A stretch of DNA of 64,000 nucleotides from Macrostomum hystrix (lineage: Eukaryota > Animalia > Platyhelminthes), in assembly GCA_950097015.1 (NCBI GenBank), contig CATNEN010000010.1:3038001-3102000 (forward strand), written 5' to 3'. The notes beneath the pieces were generated by a model. That model was given only the letters and a program-made list of their open reading frames with translations, had not been told where the DNA came from and searched no databases. Numbering within the stretch: position 1 is the first letter of the stretch; each line of letters opens with the position of its first letter. The translations under genes were made by a program, and so were the position numbers. Of this stretch, positions 19,855 through 28,841 are shown piece after piece.

Positions 19855-20746
19855 ATGAAGTTCTTCATTCTACTCGCCCTGTGCGCCTTTGCCACTGTGG
19901 CACAGGCCAACTGTAAGTCGATATATCTATTTAAGTTTTGTCACCTCCTTATACATAAACATTATTAATGGAGTCCACTTGGAAGGTTGCGAACTGAAGC
20001 TTTCCTATTTCGGTCGCTAGTCCGGGGTCATGTTGAGTGCCACTTCTGAGGTCCTGTAGGGTTCCAGTCCTGAGGTCCTGTAGGGTGCCAGTCCTGAGGT
20101 CCTGTAGGGTTCCAGTCCTGAGGTTCTGTAGGGTGCCAGTCATGGGGTCCTGTTGGGTGCCAGTCCTGAGGTTCTGTAGGGTGCCAGTCCTGAGGTCCTG
20201 TAGGGTGCCAGTCCTGAGGTCCTGTAGGGTGCCAGTCCTGAGGTCCTGTAGGGTGCCAGTCCTGAGGTTCTGTAGGGTGCCAGTCATGGGGTCCTGTTGG
20301 GTGCCAGTCCTGAGGTTCTGTAGGGTGCCAGTCCTGAGGTCCTGTAGGGTGCCAGTCCTGAGGTTCTGTAGGGTGCCAGTCCTGAGGTCCTGTAGGGTGC
20401 CAGTCATGGGGTTCTGTAGGGTGCCAGTCCTGAGGTCCTGTAGGGTGCCAGTCATGGGGCCCTGTAGGGTGCCAGTCCTGAGGTCCTGTATAGGGTGCAA
20501 GCAACGAACCCTAGCAAATTCACCATCTAAAATGAAATGAAACCCCACGCAGACGGCATGGACCCGATGATTCGCGATGCCATCGACTGGGTTGAGCGGT
20601 TCGTGCCGGAGGTCAAGGAAGTGCGCATCAACGGCAGCTACATCGAAATCCTGGCCAAGGTCATCGACGCCATACAGCGGTACCCAGGCCTGAAGGACCA
20701 AATGCAGAGGGATAATCCGCTGCTGTTCAAGCTGCTACTCGGTTAA
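19855..20746 (+). CDS. Two-exon small secreted protein, 83 aa, unknown family
   Basis: Exon 1 19855-19912 gives MKFFILLALCAFATVAQAN with a GTAAGT donor. Exon 2 20553-20746 follows CCCCACGCAG. Phases join in frame (NYGMDPMIRDAIDWVERF...LLFKLLLG*), and codon usage is GC3-rich. Confidence 0.85.
20040..20490. repeat. 24-bp minisatellite (~19 copies) in the intron of the secreted-protein gene
   Basis: Unit CTGTAGGGTGCCAGTCCTGAGGTC and variants. Confidence 0.95.
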
Positions 20747-21408
20747 ACTTTAATAAGCTCGTAAACTTGCACTCCCCAAAGTACACTCGATATAACAAAG
20801 AAACTTAAAAAATTGCCACTAAATAATGATGTAAGGGTATATTATTAATAATATATATTTTGATTGAAATAAGCTGCTAAATTTTGTGCCAAAAGAATTA
20901 TGAATAAATAAAGCCAATGCAACTCGAATAGCTAATAGTAGAAAGCTAGTTTTCTAAAAAGCTAAAAAAGAATTTCAAATTTGCTCAAACAAATAGCTCA
21001 CATTCAAACTGCAGGGTGGGAGGCACAGGTACAGGTACTTTTATACCCACATGCTTTAAAATGCTCCGTAAAATGCCCTCGCTACAGTAGCTAGGCGAGC
21101 ACATAATTGCGATATGTTCATTTCATCGCATTCGGCATCCACTGTAAGGTTTTTTGCGATAGGTGTGAATTATCTCATCGCTTGTTTAGAAGCAAAATTT
21201 TCACGAAGAATTTAAACTTACTGCGAAAAAAACATTTCATTGATTACTGAATTGTACCATACTTCTAGCTAAGTTTGATGGAGATAGCTCGACGACGCAA
21301 CTCCTAGCTTTTGGCTCATAAACCATCGCATATCTCTTGCTGTCTTTGTGTAACGACTTAGTTCGCCTGAAATGGACTTTACCTTCAGAATGTTCGCTGT
21401 CTTCTGAC

Positions 21409-21652
21409 AGAGCTTGGCTGTCTCCAGATGGAGCTTGGCTGTCTCCAGATGGAGCTTGGCTGTTCGCAGATGGAGCTTGGCTGTTCGCAGATGGAGCTTG
21501 GCTGTCTCCAGATGGAGCTTGGCTGTCTCCAGATGGAGCTTGGCTGTTCGCAGATGGAACTTGGCTGTCTCCAGATGGAGCTTGGCTGTTTGCAGATGGA
21601 GCTTGGCTGTCTCCAGATGGAGCTTGGCTGTTCGCAGATGGAGCTTGGCTGC
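21409..21652. repeat. 21-bp minisatellite (~12 copies) downstream of the cGLR stop
   Basis: Unit GAGCTTGGCTGTCTCCAGATG / ...GTTCGCAGATG. Confidence 0.95.
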
Positions 21653-21868
21653 CTATATGTACCGATTAGAAAACTGATCAAAGGATGTGATGTCTCAAAT
21701 AAAGAGCAGCAAATTATGGCATACGTTTTCCGACAATCGCTTTTACCAGACCGGCTCCCGAGGGTCGTCGCAGGGTTTCCTCGATTAGTTTCTTTTTTAA
21801 AAGCGGCTGAAATACAGTTTCAGAGGCCTCTACTAGCAAGAAGGCAAAAAGGCGAGAAGGAACTGATG

Positions 21869-24800
21869 TCAGAGTTCGAAGGCAATGTACCAACTACATA
21901 CCTGCGATTCCATAAGGGTTGACACTAGCCAGCTCAGGTGAGCTGCCGATATATCCTTCCTGCGCTTATTAATGATGGGTGCTAGGAACAACTCGCTGAT
22001 ATCGGGCCGCAAGCAGTAGTGCAGAAGCAGCCTCAGATCCTGCGGATCTTGGTAGTCCCAGGAAAATGTTTTGAACAAGGCTGTTGTGCTGCCTTCTCCC
22101 TCAGTCTCCCTAATCTGCTCGAACGATAGGGCTTTAAACAGCGCGTAGAAGTTAATGTAGCACTCATTTTCGCGTCTAAGCGGAAAAATCTCGACTAGAT
22201 GAGGTGGTAAAAACTTTAGTTCGATTCTCTTGTCGAAGAAAAAGTGAAACTTCCAAGCGGAATCATTCTTTTCAAGATACTTCAAAACATATTCTACGGA
22301 GGGTTTTCCTGCTTCGAACCTGACACCCTTGCTGACTGAGGCGTCGCTGCCGGTATTGATTGACATGGGCTTGCCCGCCTTCATCAGTGCCATGGCTCTG
22401 AGGCACTCCCGGGTCGTCCGGGCCCAATCGGGAATGCTGTTGATTTGCTTCTGGATGGTCGGACCGCTGAACTCGGCACTGGCCAGCTCAGATAACACAC
22501 TCCTAACAATGTAGTACGTGTCGTGATACTTCACATCGCCAGTCTGTACTGGTCGCTCGCCCAGCTCGGGCATAATCAGAAAAAAGTGCAATTGGTACTC
22601 AGTGACGTCATTCTTGCACAGATTTCGTCGAAACTCTTTCAACAAGATTGGAAGTTTCTCAATAGTCTCAATGACAGCGCTTCGAATTCTGTCAATGGAG
22701 CTGTGACCGCGATGAAGGTACACGAAGGCGTCTCGAAGAAAGAAGTGCCGCATGCAATGATGCTCTGAGATCGAGCCCGGGTGAAGGAGACCATCCTGCA
22801 GCATCTCCAGAGATCGTTTCACCAAGGCAAGGAGGTTCTCCTTGCGCCAATCTTCCTTCGGAGTCTTGTCCAGCATGAAGAATAATATATTCTTGGCGTG
22901 ATACGTCTTCAGACCTTTTACAGAGGCAGAAATGACTCTTTTAATGATGTACTTTAGTAGAACAAAAACCTGGCCTTGGACATCTGTGAGGCAGTGCATG
23001 AGTCGTCTCTCAAGCAAATTCGTGCTCACTCGCATCCACTTGCCCTCCAGTCCTGGCGGCGAGGCGGCAACCAAATGGAACCACGATTGGTTGAGCTCAT
23101 CCTTTAGCGATTTCAAAACTTCTGGATCGATGCAAGACTGATGGTCAGGCTGTAGCACTCTGATGTCGGGGTACTTACAGCAGTGATAAGCAGTCACAAA
23201 GTCGATGCTCGGTCGCAGCATCGAACCCTTTTGAGAGGCGCTTGGCTTTGAAACTACAACAGGTAAAAGTTACAGCAATAGTGATTTCGAATTTAACATA
23301 CTGATAGCGCTCGTAATAATGCTAACTCTCACCTGAGATAGAGTACTCGAAGTGTCCGTCCTTGTACTTTTCTTTGTCGCATGTGTGTACCAATTTAGCA
23401 GCTTGCATTACAGTCAGGTCAATGTCCGAATCGTCGTCCAGCCTTCCATCGTTCTGCGTAAAGCTCATACCCCAACCATCAGCGAAGCTGCCAACAATAA
23501 ATACGCCGTCAGTAGACAGGATTTGCCTCTGAATAGCTTCCAGTGCGCCAGCTACAGTCCTCAAAATCGCGGCGTTCTTTGCGTTGAACCCAGCACGGGC
23601 CATTTCGTCACTCAGCGTCGCTGCGTTTGTGCACTTTGAAGCCACGGTCTGCGCCAAGTGCGACAGCTCATGCTGATTTACAGAATGCAATTCATCCATT
23701 ACAAGCGTCGTCAACCATGGCGCTATGGATGCCTGGGCGAGGAGGAGGGCTCGAGTGATTTCAGTTTGGCCGTTGTACATGGCGATTGTTAATGCTGTTT
23801 CTTTCTTTCGATTCTGCAGACTGACATCGGCTCCGCTTCGTATCAGAGTTAAAGCAATCTCCACGTGCCCGTTCCTGGCCGCTATCATCAGCGGCGTCCA
23901 TCCAGCTCGAGTCTGAGCATCAATATTCGCCCGAGCATTCACTAGCATCTCAACCATTCGAAAGTGTCCACTCTTCGCCGCAAGAAACAGTGGCGACGCG
24001 CCGGACTTTGCGTTAACGCAGGCTCCCGCGTCAATCAAGCTGGTCACCGCATCGATGTGGCCCGTGGAGGCCGCTATGCAAAGAGCGGAGTCACCAGCTC
24101 TTGTCTGTCTGTCAATCTGGGCGCCGGCTGACACCAGCAAGGAGACGACGCTGGTGTGCCCCTGCTGCGCTGACGCATACAGAGGCGAGGAGCCCCTGCG
24201 ATTGCCGAGATTGACATCGGCGCCTGACGTCATCAGCTTACGCACGGTGTTTGGGCTACCATTCTTGGCTGCCATCAAAAGCGCTGAAGCTCCCAATTTA
24301 GTCTGATGGTTTATCTTAGCTCCTGCCTGGATGAGCTCAGCCACCACAGCTGGGTGATCTTGGCGGGTCGCAATAATAAGCGGCGTGCAGCCGTCATTGT
24401 CCGTCAGATCAACAATGGCTCCCTCTTTGATGAGCGATTTAACAGGATCGATGCGTCCTGACTGAGCAGCAGCATGAAGTGCTGTCCGCCCATAGCTGGT
24501 CTGAAGGTTTACGTCAGCCCCAGAAGTAATGAGTATGGAAATCACATCCACGTATCCGTGCTGAGCAGCGATGTACAGCGGCGATGCCCTCGAACCATGC
24601 AGACAGATGTTGACCATCGCACCGGACTCGATTAGCAGGCTGACAAACTCAGCGTGACCACCCTTGGCGGCAAGGTGCAGCGGGGTGGCCCCCGACCTGC
24701 TCGGCTGGTTCGTATCGAGGATGGTCTGGGCGGTGATGTACTTCGTGGTCAGCTCCACCTGGCCGCACAATGCCGCAATGTGAAGCGGTGTAGAGCCGTG

Positions 24801-25397
24801 GTCGTCAATGGTGCTTAAGTCGGCCCCGGCAGCTAAAAGAAGACTCAGAATCTCCCCGTGGCCCCTCATCAAGGCCAACTCCGCTATGGTCAGGCGTTTG
24901 CTACGCATGATGCACTTCTCCAACTCGCTGAGCGGCCTTTCCAACACCTGCAGATTTGTCGCCATGCCTTCCAGCGCCCAGAGAGCGGACGAGCAGGAGC
25001 TACGAAAGTCAATATCGGCGCCCGCTCGAAGCAGGACCTCCACGGAATCGAGCCGGCCTAATAAGACGGCTATGAACAGTGGCGATCCGACTGCCAGATC
25101 CCCGGTGCAGTAGATTGTGGCACCCATCTTCAGAAGCAGCCGAATAGCGGCACCCGCGGTCCTTGGCGATGCGGCGGCCACGTGCAACGGCCTGCTTCCG
25201 TCGGGTGCTCTGGAGTTCACAATTTCCGGATTATCCACGAGAAGCGCCTCTGCCGAGTTTAGCTCGCCGTTCAACAGTGCTAGTCTGAGTTGTTCCGATA
25301 AGGTGCGTGGTATAGTAGAGTCTATATCCCGGACTTCGGCCATCTGGTCCGGAATCGCGCATCCGATAGCTGGACATTGCCAAGCATTATCACGCAT
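21869..25397 (-). CDS. Ankyrin-repeat Mab-21/cGAS-like nucleotidyltransferase (cGLR), ~1149 aa, 2 exons
   Basis: Exon 1 23333-25397 has ~15 ankyrin repeats and then VGSFADG...DSDIDLTV. A 79-nt GT-AG intron follows. Exon 2 21869-23253 has SIDFV, WMRVSTNLLERRL and LKTYHAKNILF. TATATAAAAA at 25439-25448 supports ATG 25397 (25343 is an alternative). Confidence 0.88.
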
Positions 25398-25849
25398 TTT
25401 TGTTCCAAAAGCGGCTCTCACAAACACTCCATGCCAGATTTTTATATACTTGGCAGGTGCGGCCGTGCCTTTAGAAAATTACACGGCAAGTCCCGGCCAA
25501 AGCTGTCAAAAAACATTAAATGCAGCAATTGCTCACTAGCAAGCTACTGCCCTGTTGTGGTTTGAGTTCTGAAACTTAATTAGATCTGATAAGATACGAG
25601 CGTAGTAGCTTAAAAACAGACGTCTGCAACATCCAACTGTTGAGCCCAGAGTGTCGTTGGAAGTACAGTGATTTTGCTTTGATTGCTCTCTGGTGGGCCA
25701 GACTGCAGCTAAGCCACAAAATACCGGATGTTCCATTGTGCCGACCTCGAGTTTGACTCCGTTGATTAAAATATATTCTAAAATATTTCTCAGCGACGTA
25801 ACCGCCTTTTCAAAATTGGCACCCACAAAGATTTGAACACTCTTCTGGA

Positions 25850-25915
25850 GTCTAGTAGCTTCGGGTTAGAGCTTCCGACTCCAAACTGAAAGGTCCGGGG
25901 TTCGAATCACGGCTC
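25850..25915 (+). mobile_element. SINE head fragment (tRNA-like)
   Basis: GGTTAGAGC...GGTTCGAATCAC, similar to the other SINE heads, with no body. Confidence 0.45.
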
Positions 25916-26595
25916 AGAGAAAGACAAAGCAAGATCCTGAAAAAGTACAATTTTCATTTCACCGTGCTGTGAAATTGCAACAAAAATCTGCTGCAGCAAA
26001 ATTACCTGCTAGTTTTTGGATTTGCCAGGCAATAGCTGCGGCTGTACATCTTCTTTTTCTATACATTCCTACCCTGTCAACCGCATTTCAGAGCCATCAG
26101 AAACAATCAACTATAACAAATAAGGCACTGATCTTAAATAGTGATACAAGCGTACAAGCCAGGCAGAATATATATTTGTGACCTGTAAAAGAACAAGAAG
26201 AAAATTTGTATAAAAGAGAAAGTTGTAAGTGCACTCAGGAACATTTAGAAATAATTTTGTGTATTTCTATGAAATTAATCTCTATAAGTAAGTACTGTAC
26301 TGCTTGTTAATAACTGAACTAAATGGTTTCTTAAAAATATAGCATTTGTTTGAATATTGCCTATAATACGAGAGCTTTATCATAAATGGTGCAGAGTGTT
26401 AGTAACTTTTATTGCTTTGGTTAGCGACACCAGGACAACTATTACTAGATAAGAATCTCGCTTTTAAAAAGAATATATAGGAAGAGCAGCTCAAGTCACT
26501 ATGGTTAAGCGCATTAGCGTGGCGGTCTTTTGCTAAGCCACGCTTCCGTGCACATGCTCCCACAGTACTAGCAGTAGTGCAGTCAGCGAGCGGGC

Positions 26596-28841
26596 TCAGT
26601 CCAGCACCGCATCCATCTGGGGATTCTTCTTGTTGCCGCGGCAGGCCGTCACCGGGATCAGCGGATGCTGGGTGGTCTTCAGGTAGTTCTAGACAAAACA
26701 GCGATTTTCTGCACTTTAGGCTCGACTTCTTTCAAACTGAAATTGTCACGCCAAGGTAGACACCGATACTCACGTGCGCGTACTGCAGGGCGTTCTTCTT
26801 CTCCGCGTCAGAGGCCTTGGTGCCGACGTACACGAAGATCTCGACACCGATGTCGATGATGTACACATCCTGCAGTGGCAAAGAACGCGTAAACAGATTG
26901 CCCAACTACTAAAAGTAGTACAACCATATTTGGGTGAAAACTATTGAACACTCACATCTTCGTTGATCATGGATCTTGGACACTTGCCCTCGGACACCAG
27001 CGAGTACTGCAGCTTGCCAGACTCGTCAGACAGACTGCGGAGGGTGAGGTGGGTGTGAGACTGGATCAAAGATTGAGGAGGGCGGGGTGGGTGTGAGACT
27101 GAATAATAGATTGAGGAGGGTAAGATGGGTGTGAGACTGGATCAAATATTGAGGAGGGTAAGATGGGTGTGAGACTGGATCAAAGATTGAGGAGGGTAAG
27201 ATGGGTGTGAGACTGGATCAAATATTGAGGAGGGTAAGATGGGTGTGAGACTGGATCAAAGATTGAGGAGGGCGGGGTGGGTGTGAGACTGGATCAAAGA
27301 TTGAGGAGAGAGGTGGGTGTGAGACTGGATCAAAGATTGAGGAGTGAGGTGGGTGTGAGACTGAATCAAAGATTGAGGAGGGCGGGGTGGGTGTGAGACT
27401 GAATCAAATATTGAGGAGGGCGGGGTGGGTGAGAGACTGGATCAAAGATTGAGGAGGGTAAGATGGGTGTGAGACTGGATCAAAGATTGAGGAGTGAGGT
27501 GGGTGTAAGACTGGATCAAAGATTGAGGAGGGCGGGGTGGGTGTGAGGCAATCATATACGGAGGAGGGCGGGGTGGGTGACAGTTTGGCTGAACCCACCG
27601 AAACATGGCCTTCTTGCCGCTGCGCACGTCGCTGTGCACCTCGGAGGACTTCCTGGCATAGGGCACGTCCGGCAGGCTCTGGTAGAACTTGTGCTCGGAG
27701 CCGATGCTGTTTTCGTCCAGCGTGAAGGTCTGCGTCTTGCCATGGCGCTCGTTCTCCAGCTGCTGCAGGAAGGCGGCGGCCTTAATGCGCTCGTCCTTGT
27801 TGCAGGTGTTGCCGTTCCACTGATAGGCGACGCGACCCAGGTCCAGGATGAAGACGTCACCAGAGTTGAGGGCGCGCCGGGTCAGCTTGACCTCCTTGAC
27901 TTCGATGTTGCGCCGGACGCCGCAGAAGTGCAGCAGGCGAGGCTTGTACTCCTCTGGCTTCACCTGGCGGAAGCCGCTGTCGCAGCCGCCCTTCAGGTAC
28001 CTGAGGCGAAACGGCGGTTGAAGTGGTAGCTCGCGGTGACATTGCAAAAAAGGGAATTTCAGGTTAAGTGTCTTACGTGATGGTCTTAAAGTAGGACTTA
28101 AACAGCGACGATTCGTACTCCTGAACCTCGCGGTGCTGGACAGCCTTGTCGTCGAGAAAGGTGTCCAGCTCCACGGTCTTGTATGCGGCAGTGCCGTACT
28201 CATCCTAAATGGGATTAGAAAAGTTTGGTGGCATTTATGGGGGCATCTCAGTAAACAGGAAGAGCTTTTTATCGCTTTATCGCTTTACATCAAAATGATT
28301 ACCGCGATTCCTAAGCAACTTCATCTACCTGAGTGCTGTGCTTGCCAATCCAGAAGTGCACATCGTACAGCAGCTCATCGCCGTCTACCTCCTTGTGCAC
28401 ATTCAGCACAATGTAGGAGTCGCCGCTGAAGAACTTGCCGTAGTCCTCCTTGGGCCACACCTTCACCTTGAACTTTTCTATGCGCCACACGAAGAGCTCA
28501 TTGCTGGTGCAGTTCTTCACTGGCAGCCAGGCCGTCTCAACCTCTGACGAGGCCTCTGCAAAAAATGGGTTCATTGTGAAAGGAGCTCGGGTTGACCAAC
28601 TTTTAGTCAAGCTGGCGTAGGTCTTCTAGATCGGAAATTTCGATCCCACTCTACCATCCCCACCCGCTTTCCTCAGATTAACGGACAGGTAGAATTGCAG
28701 AAACATCAAATTGCCGAGCATTTACACACATAAGTCTGTCTAAATTACTGACAGCGGCTTACTCTTGACATCCTTCTCTGTCTTGCTGCCAAATAGGGCA
28801 AGATTTGAGTCCTTCCAGTCGTACTTCTGCGCCTTCTGCAT
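26596..28841 (-). CDS. Three-domain gelsolin/severin-like actin-severing protein, 367 aa, 7 exons
   Basis: Exons 28763-28841, 28329-28555, 28077-28204, 27599-28000, 26956-27034, 26774-26869 and 26596-26688 are all GT-AG and sum to 1104 nt. Motifs [47 protein letters not shown] and [10 protein letters not shown]. Confidence 0.95.
27044..27580. repeat. 36-38-bp minisatellite (~14 copies) filling gelsolin intron 4
   Basis: Unit GTGGGTGTGAGACTGGATCAAAGATTGAGGAGGGCGGG. Confidence 0.95.

Follow-up and report, generated by a model that had tools for sequence, protein, structure and literature searches.

Does the flatworm Macrostomum hystrix possess a working gene in which an array of ankyrin repeats is joined to an enzyme related to cGAS, and what might such a protein sense? 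The question arises from a locus in a 64,000-nucleotide stretch of the genome (contig CATNEN010000010.1, positions 3,038,001 to 3,102,000; hereafter the window), for which an original prediction, made from the letters alone, proposed a cGAS-like receptor (cGLR) gated by a protein ligand rather than by nucleic acid. The gene is real, intact, transcribed and spliced, and it fuses 15 ankyrin repeats to a cGAS-like enzyme. The locus probably belongs, as a functional and transcribed gene, to a large radiation of cGLR/Mab-21 nucleotidyltransferases (NTases) with fused ankyrin repeats that is specific to flatworms.

A transcribed three-exon gene and its paralogs

The gene model has the following parts, with the basis of each given in parentheses.

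21714..25397, minus strand: whole coding sequence, three exons, 1169 codons plus a TAA stop (open reading frames, splice joints, and start and stop read from the sequence)
23333..25397, minus strand: coding exon A, ankyrin array and NTase N-lobe in a single open frame of 688 codons plus 1 nt (open reading frame, Pfam, transcript contigs)
23254..23332, minus strand: intron 1, 79 nt, GT..AG, phase 1, splitting the NTase core (sequence and joint 23253->23333)
21902..23253, minus strand: coding exon B, with the putative third catalytic Asp, the Mab-21 C-lobe and most of the C-terminal extension (open reading frame, Pfam, transcript contigs)
21807..21901, minus strand: intron 2, 95 nt, GT..AG, phase 0 (sequence and joint 21806->21902)
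21714..21806, minus strand: coding exon C, the final 30 codons plus TAA at 21716-21714 (transcript joint, sequence)
21396..21651, strand not assigned: 21-bp tandem repeat, 12.2 copies, just 3' of the stop, probably 3' UTR or flank

The likely start is the ATG at 25397, the GTG at 25427 being merely the mechanical beginning of the open reading frame 25427..23322 (minus strand), in which the ankyrin region reads on into the NTase motifs without a stop. Because the ankyrin and NTase parts share one exon, it is unlikely that they lie on separate transcripts. Exon A is covered by transcript contigs (23333-25475), and contigs from four runs tile the whole coding sequence with zero differences from the genome. 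Intron 1 has the ends CAG/GTGAG and TTGTAG/, and its joint is present in contigs of runs X1, X2 and X3 (shorter side 204 nt in X1), confirming the predicted joining of the two exons in transcripts; a contig of run X4 has a loose end that matches the start of exon B. The joint of intron 2 was found in contigs of runs X2 and X3, with a shorter side of 83 nt. The two-exon gene first proposed is therefore right in its junction between exons A and B and incomplete at its end, as a third coding exon exists and intron 2 removes the last ten codons of the earlier model. The stop that had been placed at 21869 is incorrect, since 21869-21871 sits within this transcript-supported intron and the real stop is the TAA of exon C. 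A third joint, 21483->21724, was rejected as an intron, with its TT..TA ends, 30 nt on one side and position inside the 21-bp repeat, and is attributed to an artefact of the repeat or the assembly, or to a length polymorphism. Transcript contig depth is raised over the repeat where this non-canonical joint lies.

The genome contains at least 133 N-lobe and at least 93 exon-B (C-lobe) copies of the family, partly in tandem arrays, so that the paralog count suggested with the original prediction comes to more than 100. Ankyrin repeats lie upstream in 18 of the 20 sampled loci on which this fusion frequency is based. Most paralogs carry the array and the N-lobe in separate exons, in contrast to the single exon of the window gene. 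As the family is very large, some of its members are pseudogenes: stops are present in 5 of the 93 exon-B matches, and a copy on contig C33, 99.2% identical to the window gene, has a broken exon-A frame. These findings would also suit a reading of the window gene itself as a decaying copy or assembly artefact without function. That reading is rejected as hardly credible, given canonical splice sites, a scan for stops and frameshifts that found none across the 1169 codons, and the gapless agreement with transcripts from four runs. The expectation of a gene free of disabling lesions was thus correct.

The ankyrin array and the cGAS-like domain

Along the protein, the following features were assigned, from the N-terminus to the C-terminus.

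23724..25301, minus strand: ankyrin array, N-cap plus 15 repeats, one of them degenerate (Pfam and repeat register)
23493..23723, minus strand: helical linker, the predicted N-terminal 'spine' helices leading into the NTase core (aligns to H2-14 and H19-40 of the P0001 model)
23469..23492, minus strand: GS loop GSFADGWG (in full VGSFADGWG), with G-S aligned to G48/S49 of P0001 (invariant in A1 and A4)
23418..23432, minus strand: DSDID, predicted metal-binding Asp pair (D-I-D), aligned to D70/D72 of P0001 (invariant)
23195..23212, minus strand: PSIDFV, putative third catalytic Asp, aligned to D132 of P0001 (paralog alignment)
23006..23038, minus strand: WMRVSTNLLER, a Mab-21 'WRLS..E'-type motif (alignment A2)
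22730..22972, minus strand: Pfam Mab-21_C, HhH/H2TH-like (E 1.2e-7, 32.2 bits)
21902..22612, minus strand: C-terminal extension, 237 aa of it in exon B (model; no Pfam family)

The ankyrin assignment is firm, with Pfam matches to Ank_2 (E 1e-86) and Ank (E 6.6e-84) in the open reading frame 25427..23322 and with tandem repeats in a 33-residue register, and the 15 repeats counted agree with the approximate number first given. At the other end of the enzyme, Mab-21_C (PF20266) passes the Pfam cut-off (32.2 bits against 24.1), and a sub-fragment scores 33.7 bits (E 4.2e-8). The WMRVS..LLE stretch that had been likened to a cGAS helix is present, and its Arg and Ser align with those of a Dreissena Mab-21 protein, P0012 (YWRLSTNLMER; alignment A2); we take these residues to have counterparts in cGAS. 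The N-lobe behaved differently. The HMMER check proposed for the domain calls succeeded for the ankyrin repeats and Mab-21_C and failed for the Mab-21 NTase family (PF03281), which had no match to the N-lobe alone at E up to 10. A word search with the N-lobe region returned none at E <= 0.001, a weak test with a 144-residue query against 5.8 billion sequences. Against PDB sequences, phmmer with each exon gave no cGAS (the tail of exon A matched designed ankyrins only, and exon B gave chance matches only), and the N-lobe profile A4 gave zero matches at E up to 10. The sole PDB match of the family profile A1 was the C-lobe of Sp-cGLR1 (8GJY; E 0.018), and the alignment of P0012, as a bridge protein, to cGAS and MAB21L1 was likewise limited to the C-lobe. 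On the evidence of the model described below, the N-lobe appears to be recognisable through structure and motifs only.

The fold was approached through an AF2 model of P0001, a homolog from Macrostomum lignano that shares 41% identity with the window protein over exon B and matches both exon pieces in alignment A2. The model has a pLDDT of 87.7 and a pTM of 0.88, and its best Foldseek matches are all cGAS or cGLR. In VIA searches, residues 5-317 matched human cGAS with a Z of 19.4 and an rmsd of 3.5 A over 267 aligned residues, followed by MB21D2 (Z 18.5), Cv-cGLR1 (18.4), Sp-cGLR1 (17.8) and MAB21L1 (17.8). The motif positions fall where the GS pair ends strand E44-47, the DxD lies on E70-76 and the third Asp on E130-139. 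The structure prediction that had been called for, run here on the homolog, thus points to a cGAS-like fold, and this protein family is predicted to have the bilobed cGAS-type architecture of an NTase core and a helical C-lobe. The putative equivalence of the triad is read from the homolog model at the level of strands, because the N-lobe has no sequence match to PF03281 or to solved NTases.

Compared with human and mouse cGAS (PDB 7FTR, 6CT9, 4K9B), the modelled family would share the bilobed NTase and Mab-21 C-lobe fold, including a GS loop and a core sheet that bears three acidic residues, at a sequence identity of 12-17%. It differs from cGAS in having no disordered basic N-terminus, a longer GS-to-DxD loop and a shorter N-lobe, and it adds ankyrin repeats at the N-terminus and a helical domain at the C-terminus; activation by DNA is not indicated. 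The GS-to-DxD loop is about 20 residues long and the third Asp follows the DxD by about 46, both spacings departing from what we take to be those of cGAS. This atypical spacing, together with the fact that a fold does not by itself determine which product is made, is what could be said for an active NTase with a different chemistry, making linear 2'-5' oligonucleotides as OAS does or nucleotidylating a protein or RNA held by the ankyrins. However, cGAS and cGLRs lie nearest among solved structures, and the best 50 matches of each structure search (Foldseek and VIA) were all cGAS, cGLR or Mab21, with OAS and poly(A) polymerase absent; Pfam OAS also had no match in this protein. The OAS-like reading is rejected, and a different chemistry as a whole is highly improbable.

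The prediction of an intact set formed by GS...DSDID and a third Asp (SIDFV) is upheld by conservation, as far as alignments and the homolog model can indicate. Little or no variation is seen at the GS pair, the DxD and the third Asp, whether in A1, A2 and A4, in 19 paralog translations or in the M. lignano proteins, at an identity of just 30-45%. At the third position, Asp is found in 19 of 19 paralog exon-B translations, within P[AS]xD in 18 and AAVD in the remaining one (L026). This bears on a further possibility, that of a non-enzymatic Mab-21 scaffold or adaptor, like MAB21L1 or shrimp Mab21, which would signal by protein-protein contacts of its ankyrin and helical domains. Consistent with a scaffold are the close predicted structural match to MAB21L1 and the report that crustacean (shrimp) Mab21 proteins act on IKK-epsilon outside nucleotide signalling and the canonical paradigm (2026, PMC12928593); the accessible text of Li et al. 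2023 (PMC9980059) also gives no activity for the M. lignano relatives. Conservation of the motifs across paralogs of two species would, however, be hard to explain without selection on catalysis, and Mab21L1/2/3, described in the same text as lacking a predicted functional active site, differ in this respect from the present family, which keeps the GS pair and all three Asp. We therefore regard the scaffold as improbable and favor an enzyme.

The C-terminal extension that had been noticed as long is indeed so, at about 265 residues in total. Its model (pLDDT 85.7, pTM 0.86) is mostly helical and TPR-like with a small beta unit. No Pfam family matched it; its best Foldseek match in the PDB had an E of 1.1; a wide VIA search reached a Z of 6.9, at background level, with generic TPR/HAT-like helical proteins; and the best ESM Atlas match, to TPR/SNAP, had a TM of 0.49 and gave no specific relative. 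On these searches the extension is specific to this ankyrin-cGLR family, and no new fold is claimed for it.

Relatives in Macrostomum lignano and other animals

This kind of protein is already known, and the gene is less novel than earlier assumed. Li et al. 2023 (PMC9980059, Table S2) list ankyrin-fused cGLRs that include M. lignano proteins of this family with an N-terminal Ank_2, and Tables S2 and S3 contain PAA86972.1, PAA45980.1, PAA68676.1, PAA67649.1, PAA58690.1 and PAA68216.1. In our searches, M. lignano proteins P0001-P0011 (UniRef, metaclust) matched exon B with E from 2e-93 to 1e-40. The window protein and the M. lignano ankyrin-cGLRs have in common the pattern GS[FY][AS][ED][GA]WG ... 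D[SA]D[IV]D, the third Asp and a long C-terminal extension with 'HPF', 'PDCA' and 'DSAWKF' motifs. They belong to different species, and as the best M. lignano match is only about 40% identical, the window gene would be a paralog or diverged ortholog of an M. lignano protein.

More distant relatives differ mainly in architecture. Cv-cGLR1 (8GJW) and Sp-cGLR1 are good structural matches to the homolog model; unlike the window protein, they are single-domain nucleic-acid sensors. Human MB21D2 (7LT1) and MAB21L1 (5EOG) have the fold that is predicted here, belong to the superfamily as orphan or non-immune proteins and lack the ankyrin and C-terminal domains. An ankyrin fusion was noted for coral cGLRs in the accessible text of Li et al. 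2023 (PMC9980059), where 3 of 42 carry extra domains; such fusions are thus few in corals, whereas the flatworm family, with over 100 members, carries the fusion as a rule.

Possible ligands, signalling and significance

We infer catalysis, a product, a ligand and a downstream receptor. In the proposed mechanism, the enzyme would be held inactive until a ligand is bound, and the role of sensor or autoinhibitor could fall to the ankyrin array or to the C-terminal helical domain, because the array feeds directly into the N-terminal spine helices. Once released, the active site would condense NTPs into a nucleotide second messenger, which might be read by a STING-like receptor or another effector. 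A candidate for the former coexists with the ankyrin-cGLR genes in the genome, a sub-threshold STING ligand-binding domain at G000:C2:9104529-9104996(-) recognised from its sequence (Pfam STING_LBD 26.2 bits, below the gathering score of 27; E 5.7e-6). Its open reading frame gave a weak phmmer match to STING 8EFN (E 0.073) with the start motif of the ligand-binding domain aligned, as this motif is to solved STINGs; an Atlas feature search produced no usable match.

The ligand might be a nucleic acid, as for cGAS or Drosophila cGLR1, in which case the ankyrin array would serve only for contacts with other proteins (to localise or oligomerise the enzyme, or to recruit downstream factors) and would not be the ligand sensor. 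Within the catalytic core, the part encoded by exon B is basic (pI 9.5), and the cGLR ligands characterised so far are all dsDNA or dsRNA in the accessible text of Li et al. 2023 (PMC9980059). Against this, the N-lobe piece is acidic (pI 5.0). The activity screen of that study included five catalytic-domain constructs from M. lignano members of this family (Table S3), yet its text leaves Macrostomum unmentioned, and the groups to which it assigns the 15 enzymes active with dsDNA or poly I:C do not include flatworms. In addition, a rough comparison indicates that the ankyrin arrays are more divergent among paralogs than the enzyme part, and the array of one close paralog looks exchanged, as would be expected for a recognition module. 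A nucleic-acid sensor is accordingly possible but rather unlikely.

Within the favored reading of an ankyrin-fused enzyme family, we tentatively raise a more specific idea, to which we give similarly modest credence. The more than 100 ankyrin-cGLRs may form a diversified receptor repertoire. Their modular ankyrin arrays, evolving quickly and exchanged now and then, would detect proteins or ligands of another kind than nucleic acid, possibly with help from the TPR-like domain. They would then switch on second-messenger synthesis via the spine helix, with a divergent STING as receptor. If true, this would amount to an NLR-like recognition logic grafted onto cGAS chemistry.

A single gene on its own establishes no new principle. 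What the locus documents for a macrostomid-type flatworm is that ankyrin-cGLR genes are intact, spliced and expressed, number more than 100, keep their putative catalytic residues and occur alongside a candidate STING-like domain. Most cGLRs of animals are still orphan proteins that lack both an assigned ligand and an assigned product. M. lignano is a laboratory model with RNAi and transgenesis, and such a family could make the activators of non-nucleic-acid cGLRs experimentally approachable.

Gene structure and transcription

On the minus strand the ankyrin-fused cGLR gene contains two long open reading frames, and a scan of the window for other sequences resembling these two found none. The features are as follows.

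25427..23322, minus strand: first open reading frame, 701 aa, ankyrin array and NTase N-lobe
23221..21869, minus strand: second open reading frame, 450 aa, third Asp, Mab-21_C and C-terminal extension
21396-21651, downstream of the gene: tandem repeat, 21-bp unit, 12.2 copies, site of the non-canonical joint 21483->21724
20019-20490, downstream of the gene: tandem repeat, 24-bp unit, 19.7 copies

The first frame matches the Pfam families Ank_2 (E 1e-86) and Ank (E 6.6e-84), and its array follows a 33-residue register, with an N-terminal cap and then 15 repeats, one of them degenerate, as against about 15 in the original prediction. From the ankyrins it continues through a helical linker to VGSFADGWG and DSDID, uninterrupted by any stop. 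The second frame carries PSIDFV and WMRVSTNLLER, so all of the motifs first noticed (GS, DSDID, SIDFV and WMRVS) are present. It also has a Pfam Mab-21_C match of 32.2 bits, above the gathering score of 24.1; the Pfam search found no family in the approximately 240 residues that follow. The domain check thus bore out the ankyrin assignment and, through Mab-21_C, the Mab-21 one; searches with the N-lobe sequence against Pfam and PDB sequences, and with the N-lobe profile (family alignment A4) against the PDB, matched no known NTase.

Intron 1 was predicted from sequence as a phase 1 intron, with CAG/GTGAG at 23333/23332 and TTGTAG before 23253. Transcript data came from four public runs of one study (X1-X4), stored as contigs of unrecorded kind and containing 47-78% of the window's sampled words; they behave as RNA, since their contigs carry spliced joints. 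When these contigs were placed on 21000-26500, the intron 1 joint 23253->23333 (79 nt skipped, GT..AG, minus strand) was found in X1, X2 and X3, with a shorter side of 204 nt in X1, while X4 had a loose contig end matching the start of exon B. A second joint, 21806->21902 (95 nt, GT..AG, shorter side 83 nt), was found in X2 and X3. The two exons originally proposed are therefore joined in transcripts, but the proposed stop at 21869 falls within intron 2: exon B ends at 21902 in phase 0, and a third exon, C, adds 30 codons and a TAA stop at 21716-21714. Apart from this 3' end, the original observation was correct. With the earliest in-frame ATG at 25397, the three-exon model predicts a product of 688 + 1 + 450 + 30 = 1169 aa. 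The ankyrin array is encoded in the same exon as the GS/DxD half of the enzyme, so their fusion is independent of splicing. A further joint, 21483->21724, was judged unreliable as an intron, having TT..TA ends and a shorter side of just 30 nt, inside the 21-bp tandem repeat.

Transcript contigs tile 21902-25475 with zero letter differences, one of them reaching 25475, and none of the four runs had contigs at 25600-26150. Immediately 5' of the probable start codon are a TATA-like run (25437-25446) and a four-codon, out-of-frame uORF (ATG 25432). Upstream, from 26163 onward on the minus strand, the neighboring gene encodes gelsolin repeats (Pfam Gelsolin E 8.4e-6, e.g., 26735-26905); its transcript contigs have a much higher word depth, 65-91 versus about 3-9 for the cGLR gene.

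Predicted fold and active site

A word search with exon B as query matched 12 proteins. These included eight M. lignano "Mab-21 domain-containing" proteins (E 7.8e-88 to 1e-40, 39-51% identity) and a metaclust protein, P0001 (E 2e-93, 41% identity), treated as M. lignano because it shares 90% identity with P0002, a protein of that species. Other matches were two JGI proteins, a Dreissena Mab-21 protein matching over the Mab-21 part only, and a protein filed under a bacterial MAG. This last entry (P0006, 347 aa, NCBI, Kangiellaceae bacterium MAG, 40% identical to exon B) is probably animal contamination of the metagenome bin.

Both exon pieces and paralog pieces were aligned to the M. lignano proteins (alignment A2), with which P0001 was folded (pLDDT 87.7, pTM 0.88). 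All 50 of the 50 Foldseek matches listed against the PDB were cGAS or cGLRs, including MB21D2 (prob 1.0). In VIA, the homolog model superposed on human cGAS with Z 19.4 (rmsd 3.5 A over 267 residues, model 5-317 on cGAS 162-521), in keeping with the original assignment, followed by MB21D2 (Z 18.5), Cv-cGLR1 (Z 18.4), Sp-cGLR1 (Z 17.8) and MAB21L1 (Z 17.8). The assignment of the gene as a fusion of an ankyrin array with a cGLR-type enzyme is well supported.

In the P0001 model, G48-S49 lies at the end of strand 44-47, D70 and D72 on strand 70-76, and D132 on strand 130-139, a predicted arrangement that is canonical for NTases as judged by strand positions rather than residue-level superposition. 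The GS, D-I-D and S-I-D of the window gene align to these columns in A2. Alignments A1 and A4 show GS and both DxD aspartates as invariant, and these were kept in 19/19 paralog N-lobe translations, as was the third Asp in 19/19 exon-B translations. Mainly because these motifs are conserved although overall family identity is only 30-45%, we infer from the sequences that catalysis is retained. The loop between GS and DxD spans about 20 residues, and about 46 lie between DxD and the third Asp; we take both spacings to differ from those of cGAS. In many paralogs the N-lobe contains a conserved H..G.C.C, and a CC pair directly follows the third catalytic Asp (A2 columns about 150-250); these residues could form a metal site. 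The window gene keeps just H-T-C and H-C-C.

For the C-terminal extension, the window gene's own residues (21902-22612) were folded with 21 relatives, giving a model (pLDDT 85.7, pTM 0.86) composed mostly of helices with a small beta unit. Foldseek found nothing in the PDB (best E 1.1), VIA wide gave generic TPR/HAT-like proteins (best Z 6.9), and the ESM Atlas gave TPR/SNAP clusters (best TM 0.49). The extension is thus predicted to be a TPR-like helical domain with no specific relative in the PDB or ESM Atlas. It is conserved family-wide, and its F-H-P, P..A, D and N-F positions are nearly invariant.

Paralogs and the evolution of the ankyrin arrays

The paralog count proposed with the original prediction gave, in the species' own genome (220 Mb, 42 contigs), at least 133 N-lobe copies and at least 93 exon-B copies, five of the latter with stop codons. 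Many lie in tandem clusters, including seven exon-B matches on C18 (222 kb) and groups at C3 10.2-13.1 Mb and C1 18.5-23.6 Mb. A family match also lies about 51 kb before the window (C10:2986737-2986955). Among 20 paralog loci, 18 have ankyrin repeats directly upstream of the N-lobe; the two C9 loci, with an NTase about 70% identical to P0001, had none within the approximately 3 kb upstream examined. In most paralogs the array and N-lobe are on separate exons, while the window gene is one of a few in which the two are continuous; an intron within the catalytic core is common to the family. The entire locus is present again at C33:5290218-5296697, 99.2% identical over 6.4 kb to 21394-27761; this copy has an exon B protein 100% identical, an exon-A frame broken into two ORFs, and a frameshifted N-lobe end. 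It may represent either a haplotig carrying assembly indels or a duplicate that was disabled recently.

A rough comparison of six close paralogs (L027, L029-L033) used stop-to-stop ORFs that include some non-coding flank. Ankyrin exons showed 78-86% amino-acid identity and dN/dS of 0.65-1.06, versus mostly 87-91% (one pair 95%) and mostly 0.4-0.6 (one pair 1.13) for exon B. Between L027 and L029-L033, ankyrin exon dS was about 0.7 (55-58% identity) as against about 0.12 for the enzyme exons (87-91% identity), which suggests either that the ankyrin module was exchanged or that the enzyme part underwent gene conversion. The number of repeats differs as well, with ankyrin ORFs of 412-545 aa in L029 and L031-L033 and 868 aa in L027, which runs off the locus start. 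Ankyrin divergence, possible exchange, and length variation are consistent with a recognition role, short of proof.

STING and relation to known cGLRs

The sole genome match to Pfam STING_LBD, C2:9104529-9104996 (minus strand; L013:1501-1968), scored 25.6 to 26.2 bits, short of Pfam's gathering score (27); the excised piece gave E 5.7e-6. Its N-terminal LBD start motif aligns to the solved STINGs 8EFN and oyster TIR-STING 6WT6 at E 0.07-0.24 only, and we regard it as a candidate STING ligand-binding domain. We hypothesize that the ankyrin-cGLR may be gated by a protein ligand and may signal through STING.

Single-domain proteins make up 87% of animal cGLRs, and TPR or ankyrin modules occur in some (Li et al., 2023; PMC9980059). 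Since that study's Table S2 assigns N-terminal Ank_2 domains to six M. lignano proteins, the ankyrin-cGLR architecture is already catalogued and the window gene is a further member. Its 140-protein screen (Table S3) included five M. lignano constructs with motifs of the ankyrin-cGLR family; the 15 enzymes found active are attributed to insects, anemones, molluscs, hydras, and corals, and Macrostomum is absent from the main text (Li et al., 2023). A full-text literature search found no paper containing both "Macrostomum" and "cGLR". Of greater interest are the scale of the radiation and the modular behavior of the ankyrin arrays.
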